Origin: Lytechinus pictus
Taxonomy: Eukaryota
Assembly (NCBI RefSeq): GCF_037042905.1
Contig: NC_087249.1
Span: forward strand, 10,912,001 to 10,976,000
Length of the DNA: 64,000 nt
Direction of reading: 5' to 3'
Of the stretch, positions 5,073-45,831 are shown piece after piece. The notes below the pieces were generated by a model. That model worked only from the letters and a program-made list of their open reading frames with translations. It was not told the origin of the DNA and did no database searches. Position 1 is the first letter of the stretch. Each line of letters opens with the position of its first letter. The translations under genes were made by a program, and so were the position numbers.

Positions 5073-6501
5073 ATGGCGGTCTTTGTAAAAGCTATTTGCC
5101 TTCTTGCTGGTGAGTATACTTTTTTTTTGAAAATAGTATTAGCATGGACCTACTACAACTGTTGTAGTAGGTCCATGGTATTAGCAAAAGGGACTACTCA
5201 GTGATATTTCGATATGGGGGGGGGGGCAACGACCTACTGGTGACGTTATAGTGATTCTACTCGCTTTTCGCCTCCCAGGAACAGGTGACGCCAAACAAAT
5301 AACAACTTTAAGAATAATAATAATGATAAAATAATTATTATGATAATAATAATGTAATAATAATCATTGTAATGATAATAATACTAAGAATAGTTATAAT
5401 TATCATTATTATTATCGTTATTCTTATTGTTATTTTTATTATCATCATCATCATTATCTTTATCATTAGTATTATTATTATTATTATAATTATATATTTT
5501 TTAATAGAATAGACTAAGATCTTAGAGGGTTACAGAGTTCAGACCTGTCCTTTTTATTCTCTTCGTTCTTCTTTCTCTCCACCGTTTTCATTAAATTTTC
5601 TCCCTTTTTCCACTACTTGAAAAAAGTCAAGGGGCGTCGCCCCAGGGACACCCTCCACTGCCCCCTAGTGCCGCTGCCCCTATATTAAGTTCTTATCTTC
5701 CAAAGCATTCTCATACCTAGTCATTATTCACTCGTGACTTCACTAGTCATAATGATTATACTTCTAATTGTGATATAGATTAAATATGTTGAATCGAGAT
5801 ATTTAATTCAATATCGAAGATATGACAGAATGGAACAATTAATGCGTTAAAGACACTATCGGGTTAATTTAGATTTCCCAACTTAACCTTTTATCATTCT
5901 TTATTCCATTCGCACAGCATTTTGCTTCACGATCGAAGCCAAAAACGACACTCGTACGGATCCTGCAAAGAAGCTAACTCCGCCCGCTTCACCTCCCCAA
6001 AACCAGTTCGACTTCGTGTTCAGTATCTATAATCAAACCACGCCAAGCCCTGAGAGTCCAACTACCACGAGGATGACCAGACCAAGCACTGGCAACCAAG
6101 GTACGATCCAGCCTAACATCGTAGGAGGGTCTACGAGCATCTACGACGACTCTTCCGAGGAGGAATCCGATACTGATACGGATGACGGCGAGGTCCAAAG
6201 TGCTCCTTCTTATGTCTTTACGGGAAACGAGAATCGAGTGAGCGGAAATACACGACCAATGTTTCCTGGACGGACTAGGCAGCGAGTCATGGCAGGAGAG
6301 CAGGATGGGGACCTCGTAGGAGACTACGAGGGTGATTTCTTTGGCGTTCACGACCATCTCGTCGGCAGGGCTACCGGTTCGTCTGCTCGTGGAGTCGGAA
6401 TCGCTCTCGGTTTGCTCGGACTGCTAACTGTGGTAATAGCTGCTGCTTTCCTCATCATCAGAAAACAAAGGAGTAATAACGCGAGCTTTGTTCGTATTTA
6501 A
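5073..6501 (+). CDS. G1: acidic single-pass type I membrane protein, P16-like architecture, ~206 aa, 2 exons
   Basis: Exon 1 5073-5109 (MAVFVKAICLLA+G, donor gtgagt); exon 2 5918-6501 after cacag, in frame. Signal MAVFVKAICLLAAFCFTIEA, acidic DDSSEEESDTDTDD, TM GVGIALGLLGLLTVVIAAAFLII, tail RKQRSNNASFVRI. Confidence 0.88.
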
Positions 6502-7110
6502 TGGGAATACATCGATGGTATTAATATGGACCCAATTACAGATTGTTCCAAAGCCAGTCGGTTTCTACGGAAAATTATTGAAATATGTACATTTATTTGT
6601 AATTGATTGATTAATTTATTAATATGTAATACGTACATTAATTCATATGTAATGTGTACTTTACTATATTGACCTCCTTGTATCATTAATTCATTTTCCC
6701 TTTTATTTCATAATTTATCTTGTTTACTTATTTCATTTCATTCTTAATAACTATGTTATCTTATCTTGATTTCGGGCTTGTTTTTGTTTTGGGGATTTTT
6801 GTGGGGGGGGGGGCTTCGTTTGTGATATGGACTAAGGTTGTCGTTAAATATTTTCATGGCGCCCTTTCTCAGATGTACCCCCCCCCTAAAACCAATCATC
6901 AAGGAATAATTTAGATTTGTAATTTTTAAAAACTATTTTGATCTTGACCAATTTAATATCATATTGAGACTAAATGTATTTTTTTCACAGTGATCCGATG
7001 AAAGTAAGCTTATGCAGTTCAGTTATATGTTATTTCAACAATTAAGCTTACAATTATAATGTTTCTTGGCGCTTTACATTGTAATTATTATTATCCCAGT
7101 CATTGGATCC

Positions 7111-7349
7111 AATCATACCCGCACATCCTTCTCCACTCCCTGGGGAACATTCCAACAAGAGTTCCAAGACTTATTTGCTAGGCATACTACATATAGGCAT
7201 TGGCGTACTGCCGGGTACCCATTGAAAAGCTGGGTTGGAGAGTAGATTGATGCCTTGCCAAACGATACTATAGGGCCGCGGCGGGTGGGATTCGAACTCA
7301 CAACTTTCTAATTACAAGGCGAGAGTCAGAACCGCTAAACCACGACGCT
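7111..7349 (-). mobile_element. tRNA-derived SINE copy
   Basis: Minus strand shows A-box-like gtggtttagcggtt and B-box gagttcgaatccc, followed by a non-tRNA body. Confidence 0.65.
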
Positions 7350-7774
7350 GTTAATGTATAATATCAATGTTGTTTTTGATTGTTTTCGTTGTGATTTGCT
7401 TTCTTTATGATACATTCATTATAAATAAAGAATACAGATTTTTCATGATGAATTCAATTTCTATGAGCTGGTCAGGGGATGAATTTAATTAGTATTCTTT
7501 TTTTTCAGTTTAATATGTGAATGTGTTGTCTCTACCGAACTCTGTTGTGTAAGATACACGAAATGAGAATAACACTTTTTTGGTGCGTTAGTGTAAAAAA
7601 AATTCTAAATAAATTCATTATTTGATTGTAAAACTAATACGTGATCTCTTGCAGACCTTTTTTGTTTTATTCTTTTTTTTGGGGTGGGGGTGGGCGGTTG
7701 AATGTGAAGATGTTTGTTTCGGACACTCTTAAGAAAAAAATGGATGGTTTATATTTACCCCCCCCCCCCACATT

Positions 7775-8057
7775 AGAAAGAACACAGTGCCCCCACAGTG
7801 TGTTCACAGTGTGGAACACGAAGTGAAATCACCTTCACACTGTTAAATTTGAGCATTTCAACACTGTGTATCACATATTCACATAGTCGACCATGTGAAC
7901 ACGCTGTGAACAGTCACCCTGTCGAGGTGTCCACAGTGTAAAAATATCTTCACACTGTTGAATTTGAGCATTTTAACAGTGTGAATAATATTTTCACAAA
8001 GTCCACTATGTGAACGCACTGTGATCACACTGTTATGTGTGACACTGTTCTTTCCAC
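7775..8057. repeat. MITE rich in cacagtgtg/cacactgt motifs (family of 37914 and 44977)
   Basis: Shares internal sequence tattcacatagtcgaccatgtgaacacgctgtg with 44977-45238. Ends gaaagaacacagtg / cactgttctttc. Confidence 0.7.
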
Positions 8058-8889
8058 CAAAGGTTGGTCCACAATTTACTAGCGCATACATGCAACTTTT
8101 GTGATATTTATCCGTTGCCATGGTAACAGCCAGAGACGAACTCGGTTTTGGTGGCTCCCCTTCTAAATTCAAATGTTAGTCCATAAGGAAGCTCTGTGCC
8201 AAAAATTGTGTTTTTATCCAGTCATTAACGGTAATCCAAAAAATTGACCCTAAGCAACCCTACTATCATAGACAGTCTAATACGTACCGCATGGGCTAAG
8301 CACATTCGGTCTAGTTTCATTTATCGTTTGCTGCAACTACTTTCCTTCAGCTTTAACACTGTAAACTAGTAAAACCTAGTCCAAAACCATTTTTATATAT
8401 CTTCAACCGACTAACTGTTACATGTAATATTTACTTACCGAAACAAATATTTTTTTCCTAGAAAAGGTATCAAGACCCAATCTTCAGTATGAAAGAGAAC
8501 GATAATTGCCGAATGTTTTCCGAACTAGATGCTTTGAAGTCATAACAAAATATGAGGAACATTTTGACAAGATTCGACTCTTTTTTTTTCTTTCTTTCAA
8601 GGCAAATCAACAAGATTAAGTGGAGTTATTTCAATCTCTTTCATATTCCATTAAACAATGATGCATTCGTGATGTCATATGTACGAATTACATTTCATTC
8701 ACTTGTCAGTACTAATAAAGCAGTCTTGTGGAGGTGAGCAATTTACCTTGGCAAGGGTTCAGGTTTTGTTCGGTTTCGTTTCGTACGTGATCTGTATTTT
8801 TTTTCTCAATGGGAGAGAGCGTTCTGATAGAATTGAGAGAAAGAAAGATTTTAATATAATGATGGTAAAAATATGATACTACTCTGTTA

Positions 8890-8893
8890 CTGT

Positions 8894-8925
<32 letters not shown>

Positions 8926-9099
8926 CTACTATTTGTACAACTACTACTACTACTGCTTCTACTCCTACTTCTACTATTCTTCTCATTCTGCTTCTTCGTC
9001 TCCGTCTTCCTTTTCTTCTTCTTCTTCTTCTTCTTCTTCTTCTTCTTCTTCTTCTACTTCTTCTTCTTCTACTTCTACTTACTACTACTACTTCTACTA

Positions 9100-9131
<32 letters not shown>

Positions 9132-9430
9132 GTACTACTACTACTACTGCTACTTCTACTACCATTACTACTACTATAATATTACTACTTCTGCTAGTAG
9201 TAGAAGAAGTATAGGCCTAATAGTAGAAGTTGTATAGTACTAGTAATAACGATAATGACAATTAGGATAATAATATTAATGATAAAATTGATAATGATCA
9301 TGATAATATTAATAATTACAACAACAGCAGAAGCAATAATAATATCAATAATCATAATAATAATGATAGTTTTAATAATGATAGTAATAATGATAATAAT
9401 AATACTGATGATAATAATGATGATGACGTA
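8890..9430. repeat. Compound trinucleotide microsatellite (TAC/TTC/AAT/GAT)
   Basis: Visible directly; it accounts for the poly-Y/S/T/I ORFs in the track. Confidence 0.95.
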
Positions 9431-10360
9431 TAGATGAATAAATTCCAATATCAATATAATTATTTATATACAGATTTAGACATTAACGATATAATTACCC
9501 TACCGTGTGGTTTCAATCTGGTTTGATGGGACAGCAGATTTTTCAAACCATGCGGTTGTAAGATATATGTTTGCATATAATTAGAAAATCAAAATTTCAT
9601 TAAAAATGTAATGCAAAGAAAAATCAGTAAATGTTCTTCTAATAGGGCATCTAATCGATGTATTTTAAAGTCCTTCGGAGAGGATGCGTATATCCTTAGT
9701 TCCCTTTATTTCTTTATCAGAGCGAGTTTTCGCTCAGTGGCGTACGGGACTTTAAGCGCCGAGGGAGTATGGTAAGGCCTTTAACATTTATTCCTATTTC
9801 TGAATTATTGATATCAAGAAATATGGAAGTAAATGTTAAAAGGGCTTGCCGTTCACCCGCGTCGCTGCAAGTCCGGCTTACACCGCTAAACAAACACTCG
9901 CCAATATCAAAACAATAGGTAAACAAAATCAAATTAATGAATAATGACATATTGATATGGCTTGATGAACCTACATTGAAACAAAGTGACTGATAGTATT
10001 CGATGTTCTTTGCCTGTCTGTGAAAGGAATGAAATCCAATATTCGACATACTGGACAGGAAAATGATTAATTTGAGGTCAAATTTGTGCTAAAATTTGAC
10101 ATTGCTAATCATTGCTTGTTTATTTAAGCAATCAACAAAAAACTTTGATGGAAAATCTCGTCCGAATTCGAGCATTATTAATAATGTCCTCGTTAATTTA
10201 GCGATGTTTAATTGAAAATAATAATAAAAGGAGACTAGTGCCAATGTATAGTTCACCTTTTGATAGTCATAGTCGCTTGTGTCACAGATATCAACTTTGA
10301 CAATTGTCCTAGCTGAATATTTTTTTATCATTATTAGTCGTTTTAGTTTGATCGGAAATG

Positions 10361-10367
10361 TATAAAT
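10361..10367 (+). promoter_or_regulatory. TATA box of G2
   Basis: cggaaatgTATAAAT, 136 nt upstream of the ATG. Confidence 0.65.
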
Positions 10368-10496
10368 ATTGCTGCGAAAAGCCATATTTTTCATACCTTA
10401 ATCCGGTTCGTTGCAGAGTCACTAGAAAATCAGGTGAATACTCCAACTCCTTTCTTTTTACGTGAAATCTTCGGATTTTAGCATCCCGCCATAAAT

Positions 10497-11750
10497 ATGT
10501 GTTCTTCTGGAAAACTTTTTGGTTTGTTCTTTCCTCTCCTTGGTAAGTTAATTTTCATTGTAATTATGATATGAATTGTAAAATTTTTCATAGGACTGTT
10601 TAGATAGAATTAACATCCACGCTGAAACTTGGTAGAACCACATGTATTAGCGGCAGAATCTTGGATCAGATACTCTGAAATAATGTCACCTGCTTAGCTT
10701 AGTGTACACTTGCTTTATTTGATATTAAGTTGGTGGTCTTCGCCTTTAGAAAAATGTATCTCTATGCATATTGCAGCTACATCTTTTAGGATTTTGTATG
10801 TGTAAAGAATGGTATTTGGTGTAATTTTTAAACGAGCCAACTCGAAATTGAGTTCTATCAATTCGATTAGTGAGATATTGATTTAAAATATTGATAATAA
10901 ATATCTAAACGTATATCATGGAGTTCAAGTGGGCTGTTTGATTATGAGAATATTAATTCATCTTAAATATAGTTCTTTTATATAACATATCCAGTTTACC
11001 TTAAAGTTATAGCCTACTGTATTTTTTTATAAATAACATATACAGGTTACCCAAAGAAGCCTTCTTTAACTTTTGGTATTATTCGTTAATGAGTCATTTG
11101 ATCATGTTGATTATTCCTGTAAAAAGAAAGAGAAGCAGTTTTGTTTTGGGGGGAGATAGGAAATAGGAAAACGATAAGGGGCGACATAGTAACAAAAAAA
11201 GATGGTGGTGTGATTTTATTATTAATTGCCTTATTATGCTTTTCATTTTCATTTCATTAAAAGTACCCCATTTTTATTTTCAGTTTTCTGTGTAATGACT
11301 GAGGCCAGTCGTGGGGCTGTAGCAATCCACATAGCCAATGTGCCTCAGGAGCAAACCCTCATGAATGTCCCAATGAATCAAGTCATGGCTGACGAATCAT
11401 CCGAAACAGTCGAATCATCCGAAACGTCCGAATCATCCGAAACATCCGAATCATCCGAAGTATCAGCCGAATCATCCGAGACAGACGGATTAACCGAAAT
11501 GGCCGAAGTCGAAACGGGAGTCGAAACAAATACGGACACTGCTGCCAATAACGCTGGCCTCATGAACCCAGCAGTACCGATTCCTGTCCGGAGCGGGAGC
11601 AAAGTTGGCGGGAATCTTGCTATTGTTTTCGGTGTTTTGGGGCTGGTTGCTGTGGTAGTCGTAGGAGCTTTCTTTGTTCTTCGCAGACAAAGGCGCTCTT
11701 ACGTTTTAGCAAGATATGAAGAACAGCAACTGATGATGGAGAAATCGTAA
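10497..11750 (+). CDS. G2: Ser/Glu-rich single-pass membrane protein, P16-like architecture, 170 aa, 2 exons
   Basis: Exon 1 10497-10542 (MCSSGKLFGLFFPLL+G, donor gtaagt); exon 2 11284-11750 after ttttcag (VFCVMTEA...). ESSETxE repeats, TM LAIVFGVLGLVAVVVVGAFFVL, tail RRQRRSY...EEQQLMMEKS. Confidence 0.9.
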
Positions 11751-11866
11751 TTTATGCTCTTCACTTGGTCATCTCAACTTAACAATGGAGTCAGAGGATG
11801 AAAAAAAATGTATTCTTGATGTTGAACGCATATAGTACAACGACTAAACTGCTCTGTATTATGTAA

Positions 11867-12170
11867 CCATAGGGATATTGCAATTGCAATGGGGACGGAT
11901 TCTACAATATGGTAAATCTATTGAAAATGCTCGTCATAACACTGTGAACAGCTTAGAGGTCTTTGCCAATGGTTGGTCGACCGGGACAGCAGATCGTCCT
12001 TAGATTTGGACCTGACGAAAAATTGCAAATTTGTGGTTTGTCCAGAGTCCAGGACGACACTGCTGTTATTCACCGATTTTCCACAGAGACTCCTTTGTCA
12101 TGAAGGTCCTTTGACAATATATTTTCTGTGTTCTAGAAGGCGTCTGCGTACTGGTTGCGAAAAGAGTCAT
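11867..12170. repeat. Decayed copy of the fold-back element at 43974-44290 (also downstream of G3 and G4)
   Basis: Shared stretches such as gacggattctacaa, tttgtccagagtccaggacgac and tgtcatgaaggtc. Boundaries approximate. Confidence 0.75.
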
Positions 12171-14267: not shown

Positions 14268-15447
14268 CTATATATATTTGTGATTCATGTGGGTCATGGG
14301 GGAGGAAGGGGTTACATAATGTGACTGGGGCTTGGGACGAGAGTCTCTTAAACTGAGTCTGTAGTCATCAATCTGCTGTCGGTCAAGACATCGTGGGAGG
14401 TATGCCTGCATTGTACGATACCACCCCATAATCTTCTCCTGGGTGTTGGCGTCGATGTCTCTCCTGGCCATGCGACAAACGATGTCGACACGCCACGCTC
14501 CATAGTCATAGCCTTCCCTGTTGAGCAGCCTCTCGTTCTCCTATAGCCTGTTACATCTCAGGGCGTGCCAAGTCCCTCTTGACAGAAGCATTGAAGACAT
14601 CAGAATGAGCATTCTCACAGAAATTTAGGAAAGGTGAGTATGGCGGCAAAAGCTTCAGCTGAATATCTTGCTGAAAATTGGGTGGAAGTTGTGATCTTAC
14701 ATGTGGCCTGCCATTGTCGTATATCAGGACGATTGATTGGTTCTCCTTGCGGGAATCGAATGGAGCACTGTCGTGCCGTCTCCGCAAGGAATTCCTCGAA
14801 AATCTCTCTGGTGATCGTCTCGGTAGAGACCATGCGGTGCAACAAGCCTTTCTTTCCTGAAACAACATAAGTGACGTTGCACCTTTTGCCTCGTTGACCA
14901 TGTCACCATGGACAACTCTCCTAACAGGCTGACCTCGTTGTGCCCTTCCAAAAGAACGACGGGTCCAAATGTTGCAGCCGGTCTCGTCAATGTGGGCGAC
15001 AACTCCTTCGGCGAGAAACCATTGCGCATACTCCATTCGACGATCGAGCGTTTACTGGTGAATTCCTTCCATCCGGCACATCCTCAGCGAACTTCAGTGT
15101 GATGAACATTCCATCTAGAGTCCTGGATATAGTTGAAATGGAAACTGTTGGCTTCCAGGTCTCTTTTCATCTGATCTAGAGTGGCCAGCAGATTAAGATC
15201 AATTATGGCCTGAAGGCGGCGAGCTCTCATGTCTTCATCGATCTTATGATTTTTGGCGCCTCCCCTCGCCAGCTTTTTGCCGTCTGCCCGTTCTGAGATA
15301 AGTTGCTACGTTGGATGTGGCTGTTGAATGTTTGATGCCCAGTGCATCAGCTAACTCAAGGTAGTCAGCTTGGTGGCCTTCAAATGCAGCGATTAGTATA
15401 TCTCTATCTTCGTTGGGTATGCGCTGGTAGCTTACGTGTCCTGCCAT
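14268..15447 (-). pseudogene. Frameshifted IS630-Tc1-mariner-type DDE transposase
   Basis: HTH-like N-terminus (ELADALGIKHSTATS) and catalytic motifs HIDETG, LIYDNGRPH and LPPYSPFLNFCE, spread over several frames. Confidence 0.85.
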
Positions 15448-19051: not shown

Positions 19052-19700
19052 ATGTGTTCTTCTGGAAAACTTTTTGGTTTGCTCTCTCCTCTCCTTGGTA
19101 AGTTAATTTTCATCGTAACTATGATATGAATTGTAAAATTATTCTTAGGACAGTTTAGATAGAATTAACATCCACGCTGAAACTTGGTAGAACACTAGAA
19201 CCACATGTATTAGCGGCAGATTCTTGGATCGGATACTCTTTAATAATGTCACCTGCTTAGCTTAGTGTACGCTTGCTTTATTTAATATTAAGTTGGTGGT
19301 CTTCGCCTTTAAAAAATGTATCTCTATGCATATTGCAGCTTTATCCTTTAGGATTTTTTTATGTGTAAAGAATGGTATTTGGTGTAATTTTTAAACGAGT
19401 CAACTCGAAATTGAGTTCTATCAATTCGATTAGTGAGATATTGATTTAAAATATTGATAATAAATATCTAAAAGTATATCATGGAGTTCAGGTGGGCTGT
19501 TTGATTATTATAATAATAATTCATCTTAAAGTTATAGTTCTTTTTAGATAACATATCCAATTATCCTTAAAGTTATAATGTAGTTCTTTATAAATAATAT
19601 ATCCAGGCTACCCAAAGAAATCTTCTTCAACTTTTGGTATTATTCGTTAATGAGTCATTTGATCATGTTGATTATTCCTTTAAAAAGAAGGAGAAGCGGA

Positions 19701-19733: not shown

Positions 19734-20337
19734 AAGATAGGAAATATGAAGACGATAGGGGGCGACATTGTGAAAATGGTGGCGGTGACAGTGGTGTGAT
19801 TTTATTATTAATTGCCTGATTGTGCCTTTCATTTTCATTTCAATCTAACCCATTTTCATTTTATTTTCAGTTTTCTGTGTAATGACTGAGGCCAGTCGTG
19901 GGGCTGTAGCAATCCACATAGCCAATGTGCCTCTGAAGCAAACCCTCATGAATGTCCCAATGAATCAAGTCATGGCTGACGAATCATCCGAAACAGTCGA
20001 ATCATCCGAAACGTCCGAATCATCCGAAACGTCCGAATCATCCGAAGTATCAGCTGAATCATCCGAGACAGACGGATTAACCGAAATGGCCGAAGTCGAA
20101 ACGGGAGTCGAAACAAATACGGACACTGCTGCCAATAACGCTGGCCTCATGAACCCAGCAGTACCGATTCCTGTCCGGAGCGGGAGAAAAGTTGGCGGGA
20201 ATCTTGCTATTGCTTTCGGTGTTTTGGGGCTGGTTGCTGTGGTGGCCGTAGGAGCTTTCTTTGTTCTTCGCAGACAAAGGCGCTCTTACGTTTTAGCAAG
20301 ATATGAAGAACAGCAACTGATGATGGAGAAATCGTAA
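19052..20337 (+). CDS. G3: paralog of G2, 170 aa, 2 exons
   Basis: Exon 1 19052-19097 (MCSSGKLFGLLSPLL+G, donor gtaagt); exon 2 19871-20337. Differs from G2 at PLKQ, SGRK, IAFG and VVAV. Confidence 0.9.
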
Positions 20338-22779: not shown

Positions 22780-23958
22780 TTATATATATTTGTGATTCAT
22801 TTGGGTCATGGGGGAGGAAGGGGTTACATAATGTAACTGGGGCTTGGGACGAGAGTCTCTTAAATTGAGTCTGTAGTCATCAATCTGCTGTCGGTCAAGA
22901 CATCGTTGGAGGTATGCCTGCATTGTACGATACCACCCCATAATCTTCTCCTGGGTGTTGGCGTCGACGTTTCTCCTGGCCATACGACAAACGATGTCGA
23001 CACGCCACGCCTCCATAGTCAGCCTTCCCTGTTGAGCAGCCTCTCGTTCTCCTATAGCCTGTTACATCTCAGGGCGTGCCAAGTCCCTCTTGACAGAAGC
23101 ATTGAAGACATCAGAATGAGCATTCTCACAGAAATTTAGGAAAGGTGAGTATGGCGGCAAAAGCTTCAGCTGAATATCTTGCTGGAAATTGGGTGGAAGT
23201 TGTGATCTTACATGTGGCCTGCCGTTGTCGTATATCAGGACGATTGATTGGTTCTCCTTGCGGGAATCGAATGGAGCACTGTCGTGCCGTCTCCGCAAGG
23301 AATTCCTCGAAAATCTCTCTGGTGATCGTCTCGGTAGAGACCATGCAGTGCAACAAGCCTTTCTTTCCTGAAACGACATAAGTGACGTTGCACCTTTTGC
23401 CTCGTTGACCATGTCACCATGGACAACTCTCCTAACAGGCTGACCTCGTTGTGCCCTTCCAAAAGAACGACGGGTCCAAATGTTGCAGCCGGTCTCGTCA
23501 ATGTGGGCGACAACTCCTTCGGCGAGAAACCATTGCGCATACTCCATTCGACGATCTAGCGTTTACTGGTGAATTCCTTCCATCCGGCACCTCCTCAGCG
23601 AACTTCAGTGTGATGAACATTCCATCTAGAGTCCTGGATATAGTTGAAATGGAAACTGTTGGCTTCCAGGTCTCTTTTCATCTGATCTAGAGTGGCCAGC
23701 AGATTAAGATCAATTATGGCCTGAAGGCGGCGAGCTCTCATGTCTTCATCGATCTTATGATTTTTGGCGCCTCCCCTCGCCAGCTTTTTGCCGTCTGCCA
23801 GTTCTGAGATAAGTTGCTACGTTGGATGTGGCTGTTGAATGTTTGATGCCCAGTGCATCAGCTAACTCAAGGTAGTCAGCTTGGTGGCCTTCAAATGCAG
23901 CGATTAGTATATCTCTATCTTCGTTGGGTATGCGCTGGTATCTTACGTGTCCTGCCAT
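22780..23958 (-). pseudogene. Second copy of the frameshifted IS630-Tc1-type transposase
   Basis: Near-identical to 14268-15447, with the same broken frames. Confidence 0.85.
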
Positions 23959-27231: not shown

Positions 27232-28513
27232 ATGTGTTCTTCTGGAAAACTTTTTGGTTTGCTCTCTCCTCTCCTTGGTAAGTTAATTTTCATCGTAACT
27301 ATGATATGAATTGTAAAATTATTCTTAGGACAGTTTAGATAGAATTAACATCCACGCTGAAACTTGGTAGAACACTAGAACCACATGTATTAGCGGCAGA
27401 TTCTTGGATCGGATACTCTTTAATAATGTCACCTGCTTAGCTTAGTGTACACTTGCTTTATTTGATATTAAGTTGGTGGTCTTTGCCTTTAAAAAATGTA
27501 TCTCTATGCATATTGCAGCTTTATCCTTTTAGGATTTTTTATGTGTAAAGAATGGTAATTGATGTAATTTTTAAACGAGTCAACTCGAAATTGAGTTCTA
27601 TCAATTCGATTAGTGAGATATTGATTTAAAATATTAATAATAAATATCTAAAAGTATATCATGGAGTTCAGGTGGGCTGTTTGATTATTAGAATAATAAT
27701 TCATCTTAAAGTTATAGTTCTTTTTAGATAACATATCCAATTATCCTTAAAGTTATAATGTAGTTCTTTATAAATAATATATCCAGGCTACCCAAAAAAA
27801 TATTCTTCAACTTTTGGTATTATTCGTTAGTGAGTCATTTGATCATGTTGATTATTCCTTTAAAAAGAAGGAGAAGCGGATAATTTTTTTTTTTTTGGGG
27901 GGGGGGGAGAAGATAGGAAATATGAAGACGATGGGGGGCGACATTGTGAAAATGGTGGCGGTGACAGTGGTGTGATTTTATTATTAATTGCCTGATTGTG
28001 CCTTTCATTTTCATTTCAATCTAACCCATTTTCATTTTACTTTCAGTTTTCTGTGTAATGACTGAGGCCAGTCGTGGGGCTGTAGCAATCCACATAGCCA
28101 ATGTGCCTCAGGAGCAAACCCTAATGAATGTCCCAATGAATCAAGTCATGGCTGACGAATCATCCGAAACAGTCGAATCATCCGAAACGTCCGAATCATC
28201 CGAAACATCCGAATCATCCGAAGTATCAGCCGAATCATCCGAGACAGACGGATTAACCGAAATGGCCGAAGTCGAAACGGGAGTCGAAACAAATACGGAC
28301 GCTGCTGCCAATAACGCTGGCCTCATGAACCCAGCAGTACCGATTCCTGTCCGGAGCGGGAGCAAAGTTGGCGGGAATCTTGCTATTGTTTTCGGTGTTT
28401 TGGGGCTGGTTGCTGTGGTAGTCGTAGGAGCTTCCTTTGTTCTTCGCAGACAAAGGCGCTCTTACGTTTTAGCAAGATATGAAGAACAGCAACTGATGAT
28501 GGAGAAATCGTAA
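27232..28513 (+). CDS. G4: paralog of G2/G3, 170 aa, 2 exons
   Basis: Exon 1 27232-27277 (G3-type); exon 2 28047-28513 (G2-type, with a private F-to-S change in the TM and a T-to-A change). Confidence 0.9.
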
Positions 28514-30935: not shown

Positions 30936-31307
30936 CAGATCTCACTTGCAGGCAACTTTACCACCATTAATCAAGACAAATTGAAAACTGTATGCATTTC
31001 TTGATCATTTTAATAATTGTCATATCTTAGAGCATGTAAAGCAAAATAGTAAAACCATAGAACACCATTTTGTGTCTGCTACACATACAAGTTATAGGAA
31101 AATCATCATCGCAATATAAATATTATATTGATTGACATTAGAGCTGACATTTCATTCGAAATAATTACACGTATAGGCATTTGTATTTGACAAATTTGAC
31201 AAAGTAAAGCAATCTTAGAATTATTTTTAAAAAAAGTTCTTCACTTTATTTTTTATTTATTTTTTTACTGATAGTTGTTTCACGAGGATTTTTCATGAGT
31301 ATGACAA

Positions 31308-31418
31308 CGCTACAGTTACACCAACGAAACTGACTCCAAATCCGACAAATGTTGTGCATTGGAAATAACGTAACTGCATTCGTCTGTCTGGGGTCGGTTT
31401 CGCCGCTGTAACTGTGCC
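31308..31418. repeat. ~110 bp palindromic MITE in the G5 3' flank (relatives at ~30391-30500, ~43698-43810 and, split by an insertion, ~44930-45300)
   Basis: acagttacacc...gtgtaactgt-type inverted ends and a shared cattggaaataacgtaa core. Confidence 0.6.
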
Positions 31419-31450
31419 TGTGGCATAAGATTAGGCAATGAAATATACGA

Positions 31451-32376
31451 TTAAGCAAAATTATCTCTTCTGTGCTTCCTTATTGCAAAGACAGCCCCAG
31501 CAATGACGACAGCGACTACTCCAACCGCGGCAAGAGCGATTGCAACGGTCTGTCCTGAAGCCGCTGACTCCCTGCCGAATACGCCATTGTGCCCTCGAGC
31601 TCTGGTGTTGGGGAGCATATTCCCGGCTACTTGGTTTCCACTACCGACCGAGACCGGTGCACCAGCAGGAGCAGCCGCGGCGTTATTACCGGTAGCCGCA
31701 GCGTTGTTACCGGTAGCTGCGGCGTTGTTACCGGTAGCCGCGGCGGCAATGTCCTCGTCCGCATCGTTGTCCATGTCGTCCTCGGATGATTCGGTAGATT
31801 CGGAACTCACACTGTCGTCGTCATCTGTAGTGGTTGTGTTCATCTGGGTTGTGGGGGTCGTGTCACCCATGGTCTGCTTCTGTGGTACGTTTAACCCTTG
31901 CCTTGCCTCGGCCATAATACAGAAAACTGTGGAGAGGACGTTGAAATACCGTTTAGACGTTTTCCTTGAGCTTCAAAGAATATGGGGGCAGTCTTTAGTC
32001 AGTCACATAAAGATAATCCATGGTAATTACCAGAACTGATCTTTATGTGACAGACTAAATTCAAAACAAAAATCATATCATATAACATTAAAATGATATT
32101 TGTTTTGAATAATTCATAATGAGATAAACTTATTCGTGACGGTGTAGACATACTGATTAAGCAAACAACTAACAAACTTTAAGATGATTTAATCGAGAAA
32201 AGTGAAAACCTTTAAAGTTGGGCTCTTCCATAATAATGTCGTATCACCCCCCCCCCCCATAATATTTTATTTACCACCGGCAGTCAGATATGAGGTTTTA
32301 TAAAGAGTAAGAAAATAAGCATGTACTTACCAAACAGAAGACAAAAAAGACCAAACATCTTTCCAGTAGAAGCCAT
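31451..32376 (-). CDS. G5: acidic single-pass membrane protein, P16-like architecture, 173 aa, 2 exons
   Basis: Exon 1 32376-32331 (MASTGKMFGLFCLLF+G, donor gtaagt); exon 2 31926-31451 (VFCIMAEA...). DDDDSVSSESTESSEDD, (ATGNNAA)x3, TM VAIALAAVGVVAVVIAGAVFAI, tail RKHRRDNFA. Confidence 0.9.
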
Positions 32377-32500
32377 TTTGATTTTAAGCGATTTGTCAGT
32401 ACTAAAATTTAGGAGCAAGAAAGTGTGACCAGTGTCTGCCTTTGCTAAGCTGCTACGAGACCTGAGCAAGATGTGATGAAAATCTTTGAGATCAACCCAC

Positions 32501-37231: not shown

Positions 37232-37238
37232 TATAAAA
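37232..37238 (+). promoter_or_regulatory. TATA box of G6
   Basis: tgTATAAAAgg, 114 nt upstream of the ATG. Confidence 0.7.
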
Positions 37239-37345
37239 GGGAGACGTGAGGGGCATACTCGTCAGATTGCCCCTCGGCTTGATAGGTACAACTTCAAGTA
37301 GCAGTACTGATTTGAAGAACGTAGGTTTGCTATCATCATAGAACC

Positions 37346-38658
37346 ATGGTTTCATCAGCAAAGATAATCTGCCTTGTGGCTTTTCTGAGTGGTAAGATGT
37401 CAATATTGCTTTCTTAATTTTGTTATACCGACATGGCATGTCGCACCGGTGAATCCGACCCCGGACCGTACAAATCTATTACGTTATTACCAATAGCATA
37501 TCATCGATCGGTTTGGTTTCAATGTCTTGGTGTGACTGTAGCAATATAGGAAGCGAATGGGGAGGAGGCTGCTGCCCCCTGAAAAAAATAACCTGCTTAT
37601 CAATTAACCTTTTTTTTTCATATTCTATCCAAAAAGGTTTGAGACCTTCAATCTTAAGTTATAATACTAAAAAAATAAATCGACTTGGTCACTTTGCTCC
37701 CTCGTTTGTATGCGTATACTTTGTAATAAAAAATCAGCGTTGTGGCTTTTAATTACTTTTAGTCACCTATAATCTATAACCATTTTAGGATTTTTTTGGA
37801 TAATCCATAAAACAATCCGGGGTTTTAGAATTCTGTGAAATGATGAAATAAAAATTATATTACGAGCATTATTATCTTGGGCGAGAGTTTTCAATTTGGT
37901 TTTGATCCATTGACAGCAGAATAGACAATGTGAAAATATTATTCACACTGTTAACAGTGTGAAGATATTTCCACACTGTGGACAACACGAATGTGTGACT
38001 GTTCACATGTGTTCACATGGTCGATTATATGAATATGTGATTCATACTGTTGAAATGCACAAATTTGACAGTGTGAAAGTGATATCATATTGTGTTCCTC
38101 ACTGTGAACACACTGTGAGACACTGTGTTCTTTTTAGTAGGGAAACCACAACCATGGTTAAGATCATAGTATAATTTCAATTTCTTCGCAACATTTCTTT
38201 ATCTTTTAGCACTTTGCCTGGTGGCAGAAGCAAGAGCCAAATTTCCAGGTGTGGCAAAGCATATCGGATCACCTCAGAAGCAAACACAGATCAACCCTCA
38301 AGCCCCAATGGCCCAGACCGACGCATCGGCCTCTGCTTCATCAGAATCAATGTCATCGGAAACAGACGATGACGACGCCGCTGCTAACACCGCCGCCGCC
38401 GCCGCTCCAGCCGCTGCAGCACCAGCACCAATCGGCGGCAACCTCCCGATGTTGGCTGCGAACGGACGACAGTTGCCGAACACCGGAGCTCGGGACCCGA
38501 ATCAGATGTTCGGTAGGGGATCTGGAAGTTCGGGAAAGAGCGTCGGGGTTGCTTTCGCCGTTCTTGCGCTGATTGCCGTGGTGGTAGCAGGAGCATACTT
38601 TGGAGTCCGGAAATACAGACCACATCTCGTTTCACATTTCACATCAGAGGACGAATGA
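37346..38658 (+). CDS. G6: acidic single-pass membrane protein, P16-like architecture, 164 aa, 2 exons
   Basis: Exon 1 37346-37391 (MVSSAKIICLVAFLS+G, donor gtaaga); exon 2 38210-38658 after ttttag (ALCLVAEA...). SSESMSSETDDDD, TM VGVAFAVLALIAVVVAGAYFGV, tail RKYRPH.... AATAAA at 38857-38862. Confidence 0.9.
37914..38142. repeat. cacagtgtg-family MITE in the G6 intron
   Basis: Reverse-complement similarity to 44977-45238 and 7775-8057. Confidence 0.6.
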
Positions 38659-39602: not shown

Positions 39603-39633
<31 letters not shown>

Positions 39634-41015
39634 ATTATTATTATTCCATATATTCTCCTTCCTCTTCTTTTTCTTTTTTATTTTCCCTTATTCATCATTG
39701 CACCTTCACCAGTCCACTTCTATCCTCTTTGCTTCTTTCTTTTATATGTCTGGTTCTTTTCCTCATTTTTTCTTCTTTTATGAAATAATACATATTTTAC
39801 ACATACACTTATATACATGCGGTCAAATATTTATTTCCTTAAATATCTTTATCATAAAGTGATTGACATTTTGTCGCAACAATACTGTATTTATTCATCA
39901 ATATAATATAATCAAGAACACGATGATGCAACTTACTTTAAAAGTGAATATTAATCAAAGTTTGTTTCCAAAGTATGTGAGCGTATATGAAGATTATAAT
40001 ATCATAAGATTACAAGATAATGAGAAGAAAAGTGATATTTGGAACTAATACGATAAAAATCAGTAAGCAGCTGAAAGACGAAAATTTCAACAGCATGTTA
40101 TTTGTTAAGTAAATGTCTTCTTCACACCGTTTCGGGTGAATCAACCGATATAATAATTTCATTATTCATTCGGTGCAAATTGATTCTACAGTGTGCGAAA
40201 TTGTATTTTACTTTAATATTGAAATCAACGGAGGTAATTTTGCACTGATTCATATTATGCTACGATGTATGTTACTATATACCTAATATATTTGACTTCG
40301 TTATATTGCTTATTATATTGAAAATGTAAAACGGACGTCAACAACACCCAATATATCTTAATTTAAATCACATTATCTTGGAGTGTTGAGTGTCAAATCT
40401 GACAGAAATAGAACCCACTATTAAACTTGTTGGTCAATGTTTAACCAATGCTTAACAAACTTTGGTTCGTATGCTTATCCGGTTAACAATATGTTTTGTT
40501 TCTCAATATAATAATTAACATTCATCTTTTTGGTTAAGTGAGCCCAACATCATGACCAACATGACCAATGTGACCACATATATCGGTATGAATATGACCG
40601 AATGTTGAGCAGCATTTTCTGTACACAAATTGGTCAATTATTCTTGACCATGCTTCGGCCCAGTTTTGGCAAATTCTAACCCAAACTCTGTTACCAAACG
40701 ACATCTACGCAAGTTTTAAGGATTGTATTGCAGGGACCACTCGAAAATTAGGTAACAGCTTAAGTTTCTACTCAAGTTAATAAAAGATTATGATTTTAAA
40801 GTTATCATTCCATCCATTTACTTTATATAGGCCTTGTATGTTTTTTAAAATGAAAATTTCGTATATAAGATAATGAGAGCATAGCTTTAACTCATGCTTA
40901 TATTAATTCAGAATTATTTCATTTCGTCTAATATTGAATTAAAAAAATTATGAGATACATATAGTATTAGCATTTTCTTATCTTAAAAAATTCCTGAATA
41001 TATATGTGGCATTAT

Positions 41016-42248
41016 CTAGGCTTCCAATAAGGCGGGAGAAATGTGTCTGTACTTCTTGACGACGAAGATGACTGCTCCTGCAATGAATCCGACGGCTGCT
41101 AATACGGCAACAGCGACGCCAGCTGCACTTGATGAGGTGTTCCTTCTCAGGTGTGAGCCGAGGGGAGCTGGAGCTATCCGAGCAGGACCGGCTGCTACTG
41201 CTGCGGCTGGATTGGGACCTGGAGCCGGGTTGGGGCCTGGAGCCGGAGCTGGATTCGGGGCTGGAGCTGGGTTTGGAGAGGAAGCGGGACCGGGAGCCTC
41301 TTCTGAAGAGTCTGACGTGGAAGAAGCACTCTTGCTCCCTGAGGTGATTGCAGTCGGTGTAGGTTTGGCGGCGGGAGAAGGAGCAGGTGTCGGTTGATTC
41401 GGTGGAGCTACAGTTGTAGGTTGATTCGGTGGAGCTACAGTTGTAGGTTGATTGGGTTGTGTCTGGGCCAAGATACCAACTGAACAGGCTGTCATAGTAG
41501 AAACAAATGTTTTGATTATTTGCACGAGTTTCAGTATTTAATGTTAAAGCGATATAAAGTTACAAAAACATACACAATTGTTATAAATGTGACATTTAGA
41601 TAAAAATAACAATAGACTACATAATTAATATCAACTAACTAGTAGGACTATGAATGATTAGAAAGCAGAGGCCAGCTATCAGAAGCACAGTACTTGGAAG
41701 AATAGATGCCGTGAGAAAACAGCTACATATAAAAAGAACGATGATTACACAGATCAGCATTATAATGTAAATCATATTCTAAAATGTGACTAAATATGAA
41801 ATTTAAAAATCTCCTCAAATGAAGCTATCTTATATTTATAGAATTTGAAGAAAAACTGGTGCAAGAACGTCGAGTGACTGACACTTTCAATTTCTAAAGT
41901 AACCTTTTTTTCATTCTTATTTCGTTTATTTCCAAAGTAAACGATTGGTCGCTTAATTTCTTACATCTTAATGAAGAAATAAACATGAGATATTTTGCAG
42001 AATTTTACGTACAATCGACAAGATCATGATTCAGATAGACTGGTAACTGGGGAGGCTGCTAAAAAGCGAATCTTATAGACTGCAGCCTCCTATTTTAAAA
42101 AAAATCATAAATATTATATACCAAATAATAAACATCACTAGCATACATAACAATTGATTTATAGAAAATATTTAAAAGGAAAAAAAGTGATGCAAATTAT
42201 ACCTAGAACGATGACGAGGAAGGTGCCGAAGATTCGAACTGATGCCAT
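41016..42248 (-). CDS. G7: Pro/Ala/Asn-rich single-pass membrane protein with a Ser-acidic patch, 172 aa, 2 exons
   Basis: Exon 1 42248-42203 (MASVRIFGTFLVIVL+G, donor gtataa); exon 2 41488-41016 (ACSVGILA...). PNQPTTVAP repeats, STSDSSEE, PNPAPAP repeats, TM AAGVAVAVLAAVGFIAGAVIFVV, tail KKYRHISPALLEA. Confidence 0.88.
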
Positions 42249-42372
42249 GTTCGGAGTTTGAAGATGCCGGATTCTGAGCTACGATGATAAAGATAATATA
42301 AAATCAAGCTGTTCTGCAGTGACCATGAATAGGTTTCAGAATAAGTTGATATCTCTGGACTTTCTCTCGCCT

Positions 42373-42379
42373 TTTTATA
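42373..42379 (-). promoter_or_regulatory. TATA box of G7
   Basis: tgTATAAAAAgg on the minus strand, 131 nt upstream of the ATG. Confidence 0.7.
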
Positions 42380-43574
42380 CATTTTTCATTTCATTTTGTT
42401 TACCAAACGGGATGCTCTCCCAGCACGAAACGCAACAGGATATCATCTGCAATCCAACTTTTGGTCCATTAATTGACCGCCGACATGGTAATTGATGTTA
42501 TACGTCTTTGTACATTATCATGATATAATCATATACTCTCGCTACATTTTGATTTATCATTAAAATGACAGCTTAAAAGCTCTAAACAAAGGCATTGAAG
42601 TATTGATTTAATTATTTATTTTGTTATCCTTCTCTTCCCCTCTTACCCCTTCCCCCTCTCTTCCCTCTATCTATCTGTCTCCCTTTCCATCTCTCTCTTT
42701 CTCTCTCTCCCTCTTTCTCCTACTCTCTCTCAATTGCTCCCCCTCTCTCTCCCTCCATCAATCTTTCCTTTTCTCCTTGCTTCTTCTCCTCATCCCCCTC
42801 CTCCTCTCAGGCTCCCCCTCTCTCTTTCAATATTTGTATTTAAATCTCTCACTCGCACTCTCCCATCCCCTACTTCTACACAGTGAATACCATACTCCCT
42901 GTAAAGTACACTCAAATTCGAATTCATTTCTAAATAACTGTTTTTATTAATTTTTCACTCCGAATTTCAGAAGATCATCAACGTTTCTGGAGACGAGACC
43001 ATGAAAAAGATACATACTTGATTATGCAACAATCAAATTATTTTTTTATTTTCATTACTGTCCCGAACATAATTATACATGTACCTATTTTTTCTTCGTT
43101 TCTCCAAAAGATATGGAATGTCTAGTCGTAATTAATATCCCTTTCATACCCCCCCCCAGAAAAACCCAAAATGTTTATGAAATTAGCTATGTAAATTTTT
43201 AGAAAAATTGCACCTATATACGGTCTACATCAAATCCGAAGTGATTAATCACTTTAATCACCCATTAAAAAAAATAAAAGTACACTTATACAATATATAT
43301 ACATGAAAAACATACACATAAAACTACAGAAAGATCTTATCTTACGCGGGAAGCTTTCTGGTGGCCAGTCTGTGCTTCAATAATGGTTTGTACGATACTG
43401 AACTTTGATATGGTATAGAACATCCGTCAATATTCCCTCGGATGGGATATTGATAATAAGCCTCACAGTTTCTAATGAAGTATTCATCTACTTTTAAAAC
43501 AAGTTGACACATTGTTACCAAGAATTCTTATAGCATTTCCATTTATTTGAATGTGATATAAAGAGCAATGTTGA

Positions 43575-43672
43575 TTAAATGCATTGTTCACAGGAATAGG
43601 GACCGTGGCCGGGGATCGAACCTCGGACTTTCATGTGTCTTGTCAGGCGCCTTAGACCACTCGGCCACGGCA
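43575..43672 (-). mobile_element. tRNA-derived SINE head
   Basis: Minus strand gtggccgagtggtctaaggcg (A box) and ggttcgatccc (B box); no complete cloverleaf. Confidence 0.6.
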
Positions 43673-43973
43673 CTCTTCGGTACCATCAAATGCTTATGCT
43701 ACAGTCACACACCAAGGAAACCGACTCCAAGCCGACCGTTGACATGTCATTGGAAATAACGTAATAGCTTAGGTCGGTCTGGAATCGGATTCGTAGGTGT
43801 GGCTGAGGCTATAGTAGATCATATTTCTTTAGAATGACTCTTTTATTTAGTTTTTTTTTTCTTTATGATTCATACCTTAATCAATTACCGATATATTATG
43901 TTTGTTACGTAATGAAAATTGTATTGTATACAAATGTTATGAATGCAGAAGAAAACAATAAATCAAATCAAAT

Positions 43974-44290
43974 CAATAGCGAGTTTTTCGCAATTACAAC
44001 GGAGACGGATTCTACAACATAGTAAATCTATTGAAAATGCCCGTCAAATCACAATGGACAGCTCAGAGGTCTTTGTTGAAAATTTGAGAATCGGGACGGA
44101 AGATCGTCTTAAGATTCGGAGTTGACGAAAAATTGCAATTTGTCGTTTGTCCAGAGTCCAGGACGACGGCTGCTGTTTTTATTCCCCGATTTTCGACAAA
44201 GGCTGCATTGTCATGAAGGTCTTTTGACAATAGATTCTCTACGTTCCAGAAAGCGTCAGCGTAGTGATTGCGAAAACTCTTGTGCTATTG
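43974..44290. mobile_element. ~317 bp fold-back/MITE just downstream of the G8 stop codon
   Basis: Imperfect terminal IRs caatagcgagtttttcgcaatta / tgattgcgaaaactcttgtgctattg. Homologous to the 3' flanks of G2-G4. Confidence 0.65.
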
Positions 44291-44305
44291 TACAGCGCCA
44301 ATAAG

Positions 44306-45831
44306 TTATACCCGCACAACAACAGGGAAGTGGTGCCTGTATTTCTTGACCACGAAGACGATCGATCCCATGCCAAGGCCTACCATGATCATGGCTGCGA
44401 TGGCGATGCCGAACGTCGCGTTCGATGACGATGACGTCATCCTGACATCTTGGTTGCTAGGCATGTGATCCGGCCTACCCTTTATCGGGAGTTGGTTTCC
44501 AGACACGACCCCCGCGTCATTGACCAGCTCGACGTTGGTGTTCGGCAGTGCCCCGATGTTGATGGAGGCCGCGGTGCTACCGTTTGCCGTGTCGACGTCG
44601 TTGTCGGTGTCGGTATCGGTATCAACATCCATATCATCTTCCTCGGACGATTCCTCAGAGAGACTGCCGCTTTCAGTCACCTCAGTCATACCCGTTGGTT
44701 CTACCTCCTGATTGGCGGGAGCACCATAGAAGGGTTCTATCCGTAGCTCAGCTGGCTGCTGCTGCTTTACTTCCATTATGGTATCTTTTAAAACCACCCT
44801 CGCTCCTGCGAGGTTGCTGACCATACTGCAGGCTTGAAAAAATAGATATTCCGAAATAATGTTAAGAAATTTGTTTTCAGCTCTCTCTTTTTTTAATGTT
44901 GGTACTTGCTGGCTAATGTGAAGTGAGGGTTATACTCATTGGCGCCAACGAAATCGACTCCAAACCTACCGATCGTCCCGCTGGAAAGAGCACAGTATCC
45001 ACAGTGTGTTCACAGTGTGTGCCACATTGTGTGTCATAGTGTGGTACACAATGTGTAATCACCTTCACACTGTTATATTTGAGCATTTCAACTGAGTGTG
45101 AAAAACATATTCACATAGTCGACCATGTGAACACGCTGTGTACAGTCACACTCTCGAAGTGTTCACAGTGTGAATAATATTGTCACATAGTCCGCTTTGT
45201 GAACACACTGTGATCACACTGTGTTCGCTCCAGCAGGGGTATGTCATTGGTATAATAGCTTTTATCGGTAAACAGTCGGTCTCGATCGCCGGTGTGACAA
45301 TAACACGAAATCAGAGTGCATACTTTTATTCTAATTTTCAATTATGTGATTTTAGTATCATTATTCATAACAAAGATAAGAAAATCTTTTCTCCGATATG
45401 CTCAAATTAAAAATTAAAAGTTCATACTGAAGAACTAAATCTTGATGCGCTGTCTCTTTAAATTGTTTATACATTTTTGATTTTTGATTCACCAAAATAA
45501 TCCCTCATCCCCCCCCCCAAAAAAAAAAAAAAAAAAAAACAGAAAAAAAAATGTGCGAAATTCTTACATTTCGGAATTCAATTTCATTTAAACCATAATG
45601 ACTATAACCATTTCGACACTAACATGTAATAATGTTGTATTTCAGCGTTAGCCATTCATTGCTTAAACCCATGGACCTGTTGAAATCCATGATTAAACAT
45701 TAAACCAACGAAAAATTGCCCAACTGCAACCCTTCGGTAACATACATTTAAAAAAATGAATATTGAATTTGTATTGGTCCCAACTTACTTAAAACCATGA
45801 AAAGAGCGGGCAGACTTGTACGTGATGGCAT
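44306..45831 (-). CDS. G8: acidic single-pass membrane protein, P16-like architecture, ~189 aa, 2 exons
   Basis: Exon 1 45831-45789 (MPSRTSLPALFMVL+A, donor gtaagt); exon 2 44832-44306 after a ttttttcaag acceptor (TCSMVSNLAGA...). SEESSEEDDMDVDTDTD, TM FGIAIAAMIMVGLGMGSIVFVV, tail KKYRHHFPVVVRV. The AAG acceptor is less common. Confidence 0.82.
44977..45238. mobile_element. CCC..GGG-ended MITE (CACTA/EnSpm-like) in the G8 intron
   Basis: Ends cccgctggaaagagcacagt / actgtgttcgctccagcaggg; gt dinucleotide on both sides; nested in an older palindromic MITE. Confidence 0.65.

Follow-up and report, generated by a model that had tools for sequence, protein, structure and literature searches.

Eight genes for small membrane proteins in Lytechinus pictus as very probable members of a second P16-family cluster

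The window analysed here comprises 64,000 nucleotides of the chromosome-scale contig C5 of the sea urchin Lytechinus pictus (NC_087249.1; C5:10,912,001-10,976,000) and carries eight genes, labelled g1-g8. Gene structure, family relations and protein architecture together make it very probable that these are eight of the eleven genes in a second, undescribed genomic cluster of the P16 / P16-neighbour family, and that each encodes a small type I membrane protein, made up of a signal peptide, an ectodomain that is disordered and free of Cys, one transmembrane (TM) helix and a basic tail. The best explanation as a whole, in which the proteins of this second cluster moreover form a phosphorylated, membrane-tethered polyanion in skeleton-forming cells, has in our estimate a probability of roughly 0.55. 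The three remaining members of the cluster, u1, u2 and u3, are found 5-18 kb to the left of the window (C5:10,893,968, 10,900,278 and 10,906,510; region 10893968-10907004), and the cluster is therefore truncated by the window edge. The original prediction, made from the letters of the window, spoke of a cluster of eight, which is right for the window and three short of the total of 11. The genes around P16 are labelled pA-pE below.

The family relation was put to a non-circular test, in which a profile constructed from six distinct window genes only (A2) was searched in six frames against the whole 812-Mb genome. This yielded 16 matches at E <= 1.3e-4, which stand for 15 genes because g3 was matched in two pieces. 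All of them are located on C5, eleven in the cluster of the window and four in the P16 locus (pE 3e-22, pD 1e-14, pB 3e-6 and pC 1e-4), and the next match, on C20, had an E-value of 0.005. A profile that captured only the TM segment or only low complexity would not be so specific. When genes of the P16 locus were added to the profile (A1), 17 genes were retrieved at or below 5e-14, again all on C5, and by profile search the P16 locus has six family members. The match of A1 to P16 itself, at 3e-17, was rejected as evidence of homology, P16 being part of that alignment, and the search was redone without P16.

A direct comparison of the proteins by BLASTP ties every subtype to the others via u3, pE and pD (g1-pE 5e-27, g6-u3 2e-20, g5-u3 8e-16, g6-pE 1e-13, g2-u3 3e-11, g7-g8 9e-9 and g8-u3 5e-8). 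The eight genes thus form one family, as had been supposed from their common plan. The accompanying idea, that the ectodomains are barely alignable and that a homology search could miss the family, was too pessimistic: BLASTP and HMMER connect all members, and motifs in the ectodomain are conserved. The BLASTP grouping also agrees with the predicted number of six subtypes in the window, namely g1, g2-g4, g5, g6, g7 and g8. Outside the window, u1 and u3 are of a 182-amino-acid (aa) type with the tail RKYRHSIPVIVRV and are the cluster members closest to pD and pE (46% identity), and u2 is a twin of g1, 95.5% identical in exon 2.

In the alignment a conserved x-C-x3-(E/D)-A opens exon 2, and a P-(Q/A)-x-Q(T) motif comes after the (E/D)-A. 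Further conserved elements are an SSE(E/S) core followed by Asp-x-Asp repeats, often with a G-N-x-L-P sequence, and a Ser-rich juxtamembrane stretch, in places Ser-Gly-rich, that leads into a TM segment of the VGIAFAVLA type. The tail has the pattern (R/K)(K/R)(Y/Q/H)R, takes the form KKYRH-x-PV-V in several members and is extended in g8 to KKYRHHFPVVVRV. The genes pA-pE of the P16 locus (in Strongylocentrotus purpuratus LOC105443729 and LOC105443730) are clear homologs of the window genes. They have in common with them the Cys after the junction, the P-x-x-Q motif, the SSEE run, the SSS-VGIAFAVLA TM segment and the KKYRHH-IPVIV tail, although they constitute a separate cluster from which g2-g8 have diverged further than u1 and u3. 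More specifically, the P16 neighbours share the first exon of 46 nucleotides (nt) in phase 1 and the KKYRHH-PV-V tail. The first exon of pC reads MCSKGKLFCILATLI (46 nt) versus MCSSGKLFGLFFPLL in g2, with the start MCSKGKLF... in pC and MCSSGKLF... in g2-g4; the tail of pB is KKYRHHIPVIVLK versus KKYRHHFPVVVRV in g8; and the entry into the TM segment is SSSVGIAFAVLA in the P16 neighbours versus SVGVAFAVLA in g6. The proposed link to a P16-like family is therefore well founded as far as it concerns the P16 locus, given the A2 matches to pE, pD, pB and pC and the common gene plan and tail.

P16 itself is located elsewhere on the same chromosome. The forward primer published for L. variegatus P16 (PMC2758014) has one exact match in the genome, at C5:4,131,070-4,131,095, and the L. 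pictus gene occupies C5:4,128,510-4,131,095, at a distance of 6.8 Mb from the window, surrounded by the five two-exon genes pA-pE (C5:4.06-4.13 Mb). A search of the window with the L. variegatus P16 peptides and primers from the same paper returned low-complexity noise only. Whether any member of the window cluster is the named P16, a question that had been left open, can thus be answered: none of the eight is, and the synteny check shows that the cluster is not adjacent to P16 either. Coding exon 1 of L. pictus P16 measures 34 nt (MKTIIALFAFV plus G) and ends in phase 1 at a GTAAGT donor, and exon 2 encodes the published Gly-rich and SDTSSDTGSDDDS sequences. P16, pB and pC follow the same plan, with a coding exon 1 of 34 or 46 nt in phase 1, and a Cys comes after the junction in pA, pB and pC.

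The likeness between P16/UTMP16 (S. purpuratus SPU_018408; L. variegatus P16; Alvares et al. 2009, PMC2758014) and the window genes lies in a small type I membrane protein with a low-complexity region, an Asp/Ser-rich acidic run, a C-terminal TM helix and a short basic tail, encoded by two coding exons with a phase-1 intron inside the signal peptide. P16 differs in that its signal peptide has no Cys, that it contains a Gly-rich region and that its acidic run is of the SD type instead of the SSEE type. Moreover, P16 is a protein of known function and location. The window-only profile A2 reaches neither P16 nor pA, and BLASTP in a database of 16 sequences relates P16 to pE at 4e-3. A protein of the sea star Patiria miniata (XP_038071412.1) forms a bridge, matching the family profile at 9e-14 and being 56% identical to P16 in the TM segment and tail. 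At best, P16 is a very divergent member of the family, tied to it by its position in the first cluster, the gene plan, the architecture and the Patiria bridge. The published p16rel1 and p16rel2, which flank P16, are probably among pA-pE.

The structure of the window genes is uniform. A mechanical listing of open reading frames (ORFs) in the window contains eight frames of 145-174 aa at the predicted places and in the predicted orientation (+ + + + - + - -), each with a C-terminal part that consists of a hydrophobic stretch followed by R/K residues. Every one of these second-exon frames is open 5' of its first ATG up to a pyrimidine-rich tract ending in AG, and the acceptors of all eight genes are of this kind and keep the frame. 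At 358-956 nt upstream of each frame, a hydrophobic ATG-initiated mini-ORF of 37-46 nt ends in phase 1 at a GT donor. The lengths of coding exon 1 are 37, 46, 46, 46, 46, 46, 46 and 43 nt for g1-g8; the donor is GTAAGT or GTGAGT in six genes, GTAAGA in g6 and a weaker GTATAA in g7. The spliced products measure 206, 170, 170, 170, 173, 164, 172 and 189 aa, and the residues at the junction are AFC, four times VFC, ALC, AC and TC. These models bear out the phase-1 intron within the signal peptide, the range of product sizes (164-206 aa) and the junction residues that had been claimed. An exon 1 of 37-46 nt is correct for the coding part, but not for the whole exon, which in a g8 contig continues at least 198 nt further 5'.

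The models are supported by annotation and by transcripts. The g5 model is identical in every letter to a RefSeq protein of L. pictus (P0001, 173 aa), and the same holds for g8 and XP_054754466.2. The same first exon and junction are also found in RefSeq for the twin of g1 (XP_063955445.1), for a g2-4-like protein (XP_054755821.1) and for the L. variegatus ortholog of g6 (XP_041463820.1). RNA support was examined over window positions 40500-46400 in two runs of assembled contigs (X1 and X5) and two raw, rRNA-depleted deep RNA runs (X7 and X8). The g8 joint from 44832 to 45789 is present in X1 in a contig of 812 nt (depth 54) and in X5 in one of 847 nt (depth 22.5), the two runs belonging to two studies. 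It skips 956 nt with the ends CT..AC, that is GT..AG on the minus strand, and coincides exactly with the predicted intron. The g8 contigs reach 46029, and the true exon 1 therefore has a 5' untranslated region (UTR) of at least 198 nt, which contains one upstream ATG. Run X1 further contains half of the words of the g5 locus (31200-32500) in a pattern like that of a spliced mRNA, and a g5 transcript is probably present in some samples. Logan contigs with orthologs (L016-L018) were rejected as RNA evidence; they are genomic, with the acceptor and the end of the intron retained.

The architecture of the proteins was derived from the same models, with signal peptides judged by inspection of their n-, h- and c-regions. 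In P16 the mature N-terminus, determined by Edman degradation, begins six residues past the position equivalent to the exon junction (PMC2758014; the junction was located here). Together with the alignment, this makes the conserved (E/D)A the likely cleavage site, so that the conserved Cys would leave with the signal peptide. Cleavage after (E/D)A, with the Cys inside the signal peptide, is thus the most likely arrangement to be predicted from the sequence. The Cys that had been noted 2-3 residues after the junction is present with the residues as written, but most likely belongs to the signal peptide and not to the mature protein. Past the predicted cleavage site none of the eight proteins contains a Cys. 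Each has a single hydropathy maximum (2.4-3.0 over 19 residues) close to the C-terminus, followed by a tail with 3-6 K/R residues. In agreement with this, AlphaFold2, given the exon-2 protein of g5 and the family alignment, predicted one helix (125-154) with a local confidence (pLDDT) of about 90 and values below 55 elsewhere.

Each window gene encodes a 25-residue stretch that is dense in S, D and E (52-80%), and K and R are missing from the acidic runs. In g2-g5 the motif S-x-(E/D) is more frequent than in composition-matched shuffles (P 0.01-0.03), and g7 is borderline at 0.05. The ectodomains of g6 and g7 are not net acidic, with 8 D+E to 8 K+R and 3 to 5, respectively, and that of g7 is rich in Pro, Thr and Ala and mucin-like. 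The description of small acidic proteins with a Cys-free ectodomain thus stands for the missing Cys and for the S/D/E-dense run, which all members have, but not for the net charge of g6 and g7.

A comparison with other echinoderms indicates that the subtypes are old. In S. purpuratus the g5 ortholog LOC105440560 shares a 21-kb stretch (Spur_5.0 AAGJ06000009.1:2.38-2.40 Mb) with two g2-type genes and the counterparts of g7 and g6. These five have the order and orientation of the window, and the g7 ortholog, at its syntenic place, ends in the same tail. Orthologs of g5, g6 and g8 occur in L. variegatus, and a family member occurs in Diadema setosum. The homolog of Patiria miniata (L015, JADOBP010000026.1:14.10-14.13 Mb) has a 40-nt phase-1 first coding exon with a GTAAGA donor and no paralog within 10 kb, and its TM segment and tail are nearer to those of P16 than the window genes are. 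The qualification lineage-expanded therefore holds for the youngest copies only: the subtypes predate the split between Lytechinus and Strongylocentrotus, and only g2-g4, g1/u2 and u1/u3 are recent. When 1.84 billion representative proteins were scanned exhaustively with HMMER, 15 of them reached an E-value of 1e-10 or lower, 18 reached 1e-9 or lower and 70 were found down to 1e-3, and the matches inspected beyond the first 18 were mostly unrelated single-pass proteins. Every family member that bears an organism name is from an echinoderm. By these numbers the family is small.

A possible function can be sketched on the basis of P16. The signal peptide of P16/UTMP16, with its Edman-defined cleavage, precedes an Asp/Ser-rich domain and a TM segment, and UTMP16 is phosphorylated, binds apatite and is concentrated at syncytial membranes in contact with mineral (PMC2758014). 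P16 has been reported to be needed for rod growth (Cheers and Ettensohn 2005, as cited in PMC2909932), and the skeletogenic gene battery includes p16, p16rel1 and p16rel2 (PMC4778923, PMC12588293). In the window proteins, the signal peptide would be cleaved behind the conserved (E/D)A and the serines of S-x-E would be phosphorylated in the Golgi by a kinase of the Fam20C type, after which the proteins would form, at the cell surface, a dense polyanion tethered to the membrane. The analogy with P16/UTMP16 would make the membrane of the skeleton-forming cell that faces the mineral the most likely site. Such a polyanionic surface could bind calcium or a mineral precursor, or organise the matrix, and the subtypes would provide differing ectodomain chemistries. 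Exons for a Fam20C kinase domain were found at three loci (C10:10.69-10.72 Mb, C12:9.22-9.23 Mb and C15:27.36 Mb), which are candidate kinases for the S-x-E runs. Taken separately, phosphorylation of the acidic Ser run has an even chance in our judgement, and action in skeleton-forming cells, proposed by analogy, somewhat less than that.

Several results weigh against this explanation. The tie to the functionally studied P16 is indirect, because L. pictus P16 escapes the family hidden Markov model (HMM) from which it was left out (E above 10) and because the similarity is confined to the TM region, where hhalign aligns family and P16 over 28 columns only, with a probability of 77%. In g1, g6 and g8 the S-x-(E/D) motif shows no excess over composition-matched shuffles. 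The window contains one palindromic Alx1-type site, far from the genes, versus 1.8 expected in what is a crude test. A published table of spicule-matrix peptides contains none of nine tryptic peptides of the S. purpuratus orthologs, which is uninformative if the underlying Glean3 database lacked these models. In a feature search of the ESM-Atlas with a language model, the nearest proteins were podoplanin, TMEM154, syndecan, SNORC, mucin-15 and glycophorin, all with scores below 0.9. The raw runs X7 and X8 contain no reads from the g8 coding sequence, an absence that holds for those samples only. The confirmation of junctions by RNA is likewise partial, exact for the g8 intron in two runs but lacking for g7, which has zero coverage across all four.

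These observations lend some weight to another view of the cluster, one we regard as doubtful and yet deserving of serious attention. The genes may encode general surface proteins resembling sialomucins or proteoglycans, of the podoplanin, syndecan, SNORC or glycophorin type. On epithelial, immune or other cells their ectodomains, disordered, glycosylated and negatively charged, would then have a role in anti-adhesion, hydration or signalling, and recruitment to the skeleton would be limited to the members at the P16 locus. Podoplanin, SNORC, syndecan and glycophorin are indeed similar in size, in the disordered Ser/Thr/acidic ectodomain, in the single TM segment and in the short basic tail. 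The neighbours in feature space, the mucin-like, non-acidic g7, the net charge of g6, the Ser-Gly-rich juxtamembrane stretches and the absence of the orthologs' peptides from the spicule table all point in this direction, and the link of the window genes to skeletogenic cells is one of analogy with P16. Pfam searches with six products gave matches to Podoplanin (PF05808; 15.2 bits versus a gathering score of 30) and Psg1 (PF14610; 17.3 versus 30.1). All Pfam matches stayed below the gathering score, however, and none of the six products reached that of Syndecan (PF01034). Shuffled sequences attain scores like those of the look-alikes (0.78-0.88), and there is no significant sequence match to any of the four proteins. 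Moreover, those relatives for which function or expression is known (P16, p16rel1 and p16rel2) are all skeletogenic, and the different subtypes have kept the SSE(E/S)-Asp run.

An explanation of a different kind concerns the number of genes, and holds that part of the expansion is non-functional: g2-g4, u1/u3 and u2/g1 would be uncollapsed haplotypes or very recent duplicates, and some genes, such as g7, would be silent or decaying. The identities in exon 2 are indeed high (97.6-99.4% among g2-g4, 99.5% for u1/u3 and 95.5% for g1/u2), and the repeat units around g2-g4 (window 10000-31000) are 88-98% identical over kilobases, with indels, which is within the range of allelic divergence in sea urchins. 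An older RefSeq release has three u-type loci versus two in the present assembly, and g7 combines the weak GTATAA donor with the missing RNA coverage. We nevertheless consider this unlikely as an account of the cluster, since reading frames, donors and acceptors are intact in all copies, two g2-type genes are present in S. purpuratus too, and the g7 ortholog is conserved there in place and tail. For g2-g4 themselves, the data fit either a recent tandem triplication or uncollapsed haplotypes. The notion that the ORFs are merely chance open frames in low-complexity DNA might be suggested by the composition of the sequence and by the 178-aa ORF antisense to g5 (31503-32039, plus strand), which we read as a by-product of the Ala/Ser/Asp codon repeats and not as a gene. 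This notion is refuted, its residual probability being negligible, by RefSeq proteins that equal the g5 and g8 models exactly, the spliced g8 transcript, the restriction of profile matches to two clusters in 812 Mb, and the orthologs in four other echinoderm genomes, S. purpuratus included.

The second P16-family cluster, as we prefer to read the window, had also been described as organised like the vertebrate SCPP cluster. Both are tandem arrays of genes for small, fast-evolving, disordered acidic proteins with S-x-E motifs. SCPP genes, however, have phase-0 introns and more than two coding exons, one of which contains the signal peptide entirely, and their products are secreted and have no TM helix. 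In the window genes the signal peptide is divided by a phase-1 intron between the two coding exons, and every member has a TM anchor. The comparison is therefore one of analogy and not of homology. A wider proposal, which we put forward as speculative and on balance improbable, is that echinoids have, on one chromosome, two gene clusters for about 17 acidic phosphoproteins that are P16-like and tethered to the membrane, and that the 11-gene cluster is an undescribed part of the biomineralization toolkit, diversified by subtype. Each chemistry (SSET repeats, Ala-rich, Pro/Thr mucin-like or Asp-x-Asp runs) would then serve a different skeletal element or growth zone, and the cluster would be a membrane-anchored functional counterpart of the SCPP cluster.

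P16 is one of the few echinoderm-specific proteins that have been shown to be needed for the growth of skeletal rods, and the usual picture is that of one gene and two relatives. The present analysis places it in a family of about 17 L. pictus genes, 11 of which lie in a cluster of their own. This cluster is conserved in S. purpuratus, and the annotation of its genes goes no further than uncharacterized or a misleading name. Redundancy within the family may affect the reading of P16 loss-of-function results. The genes constitute a defined set for expression mapping and knockout that is genetically testable in L. pictus, and the conserved motifs (P-x-x-Q, the SSEE-Asp run, GN-x-LP and the KKYRH-x-PV-V tail) are open to mutation. 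Should the cluster be expressed outside the skeleton, P16 would have arisen from a broader, sialomucin-like class of surface proteins, which bears on the origins of biomineralization genes.

The individual genes are arranged as follows, in window coordinates and with the stop codon included in exon 2. On the plus strand, coding exon 1 of g1 (5073..5109) encodes MAVFVKAICLLA plus 1 nt and ends in phase 1 at a GTGAGT donor, as in the RefSeq model of its twin u2, and exon 2 (5918..6501) completes the 206-aa product and matches the profile at 8e-62. The exons of g2 (10497..10542 and 11284..11750, plus strand) begin with MCSSGKLFGLFFPLL plus 1 nt and a GTAAGT donor, and those of g3 (19052..19097 and 19871..20337, plus) with MCSSGKLFGLLSPLL plus 1 nt, the N-terminus and junction being those of XP_054755821.1. 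For g4 (27232..27277 and 28047..28513, plus) exon 1 was defined by the mini-ORF and its donor. The second exons of g2, g3 and g4, each leading to a product of 170 aa, are supported by ORF, spliced model and profile match, as is that of g6. The latter gene (37346..37391 and 38210..38658, plus; 164 aa) opens with MVSSAKIICLVAFLS plus 1 nt and a GTAAGA donor, with the N-terminus and junction of the L. variegatus protein. On the minus strand, g5 starts with MASTGKMFGLFCLLF plus 1 nt and a GTAAGT donor (32331..32376) and continues in 31451..31926, its 173-aa spliced model being that of RefSeq. Exon 1 of g7 (42203..42248, minus) encodes MASVRIFGTFLVIVL plus 1 nt before the weaker donor, and exon 2 (41016..41488) yields the 172-aa product with the Pro/Ala/Thr-rich ectodomain. 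For g8, also on the minus strand, exon 1 as defined by the transcript contigs spans 45789..46029, with 43 nt of coding sequence from the ATG at 45831, and exon 2 (44306..44832) completes the 189-aa product.

All eight genes are annotated yet uncharacterized. No paper was found for the eight LOC identifiers that were queried (five for window-cluster genes or their orthologs, two for the P16 locus of S. purpuratus and one for the u2 twin), and a literature search for p16-like or p16 family gave papers on CDKN2A only. In RefSeq, g5 is named autotransporter adhesin BpaC-like and the Patiria homolog paraneoplastic antigen Ma6E-like, both of which are low-complexity misnomers. The L. pictus protein XP_054755821.1 (P0031, LOC129261809) measures 97 aa and combines the first exon of g3/g4 with the TM segment and tail but lacks the acidic run. 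The protein is reminiscent of UTMP16S, the short isoform of P16, and may be a variant copy or an annotation artefact.

Outside the cluster, the flanks of the window (1-5000 and 46000-64000) contain no ORF of at least 120 aa except low-complexity ones, and their stop-to-stop frames of at least 100 aa are short and without recognisable content. The ORF at 57005-57370, the only one of the flanks put through Pfam, matched no family. The part from 46 to 64 kb is without convincing coding sequence, and a run of 320 N at 46963-47282 is either an assembly gap or a masked stretch. Just 3' of the g8 stop (43450-44250) the summed contig depth rises to 180-1000, with many loose ends, and a repeated element is probably located in or beside the g8 3'UTR. 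The repeat units of g2 and g3 each contain a 161-aa ORF on the minus strand (14551-15036 and 23062-23547), the two being near-identical. The former matches the DDE_3 transposase domain of Pfam at 6.9e-8, and from this match both are assigned to a fragment of a Tc1/mariner-like element that appears to have been duplicated along with the gene.

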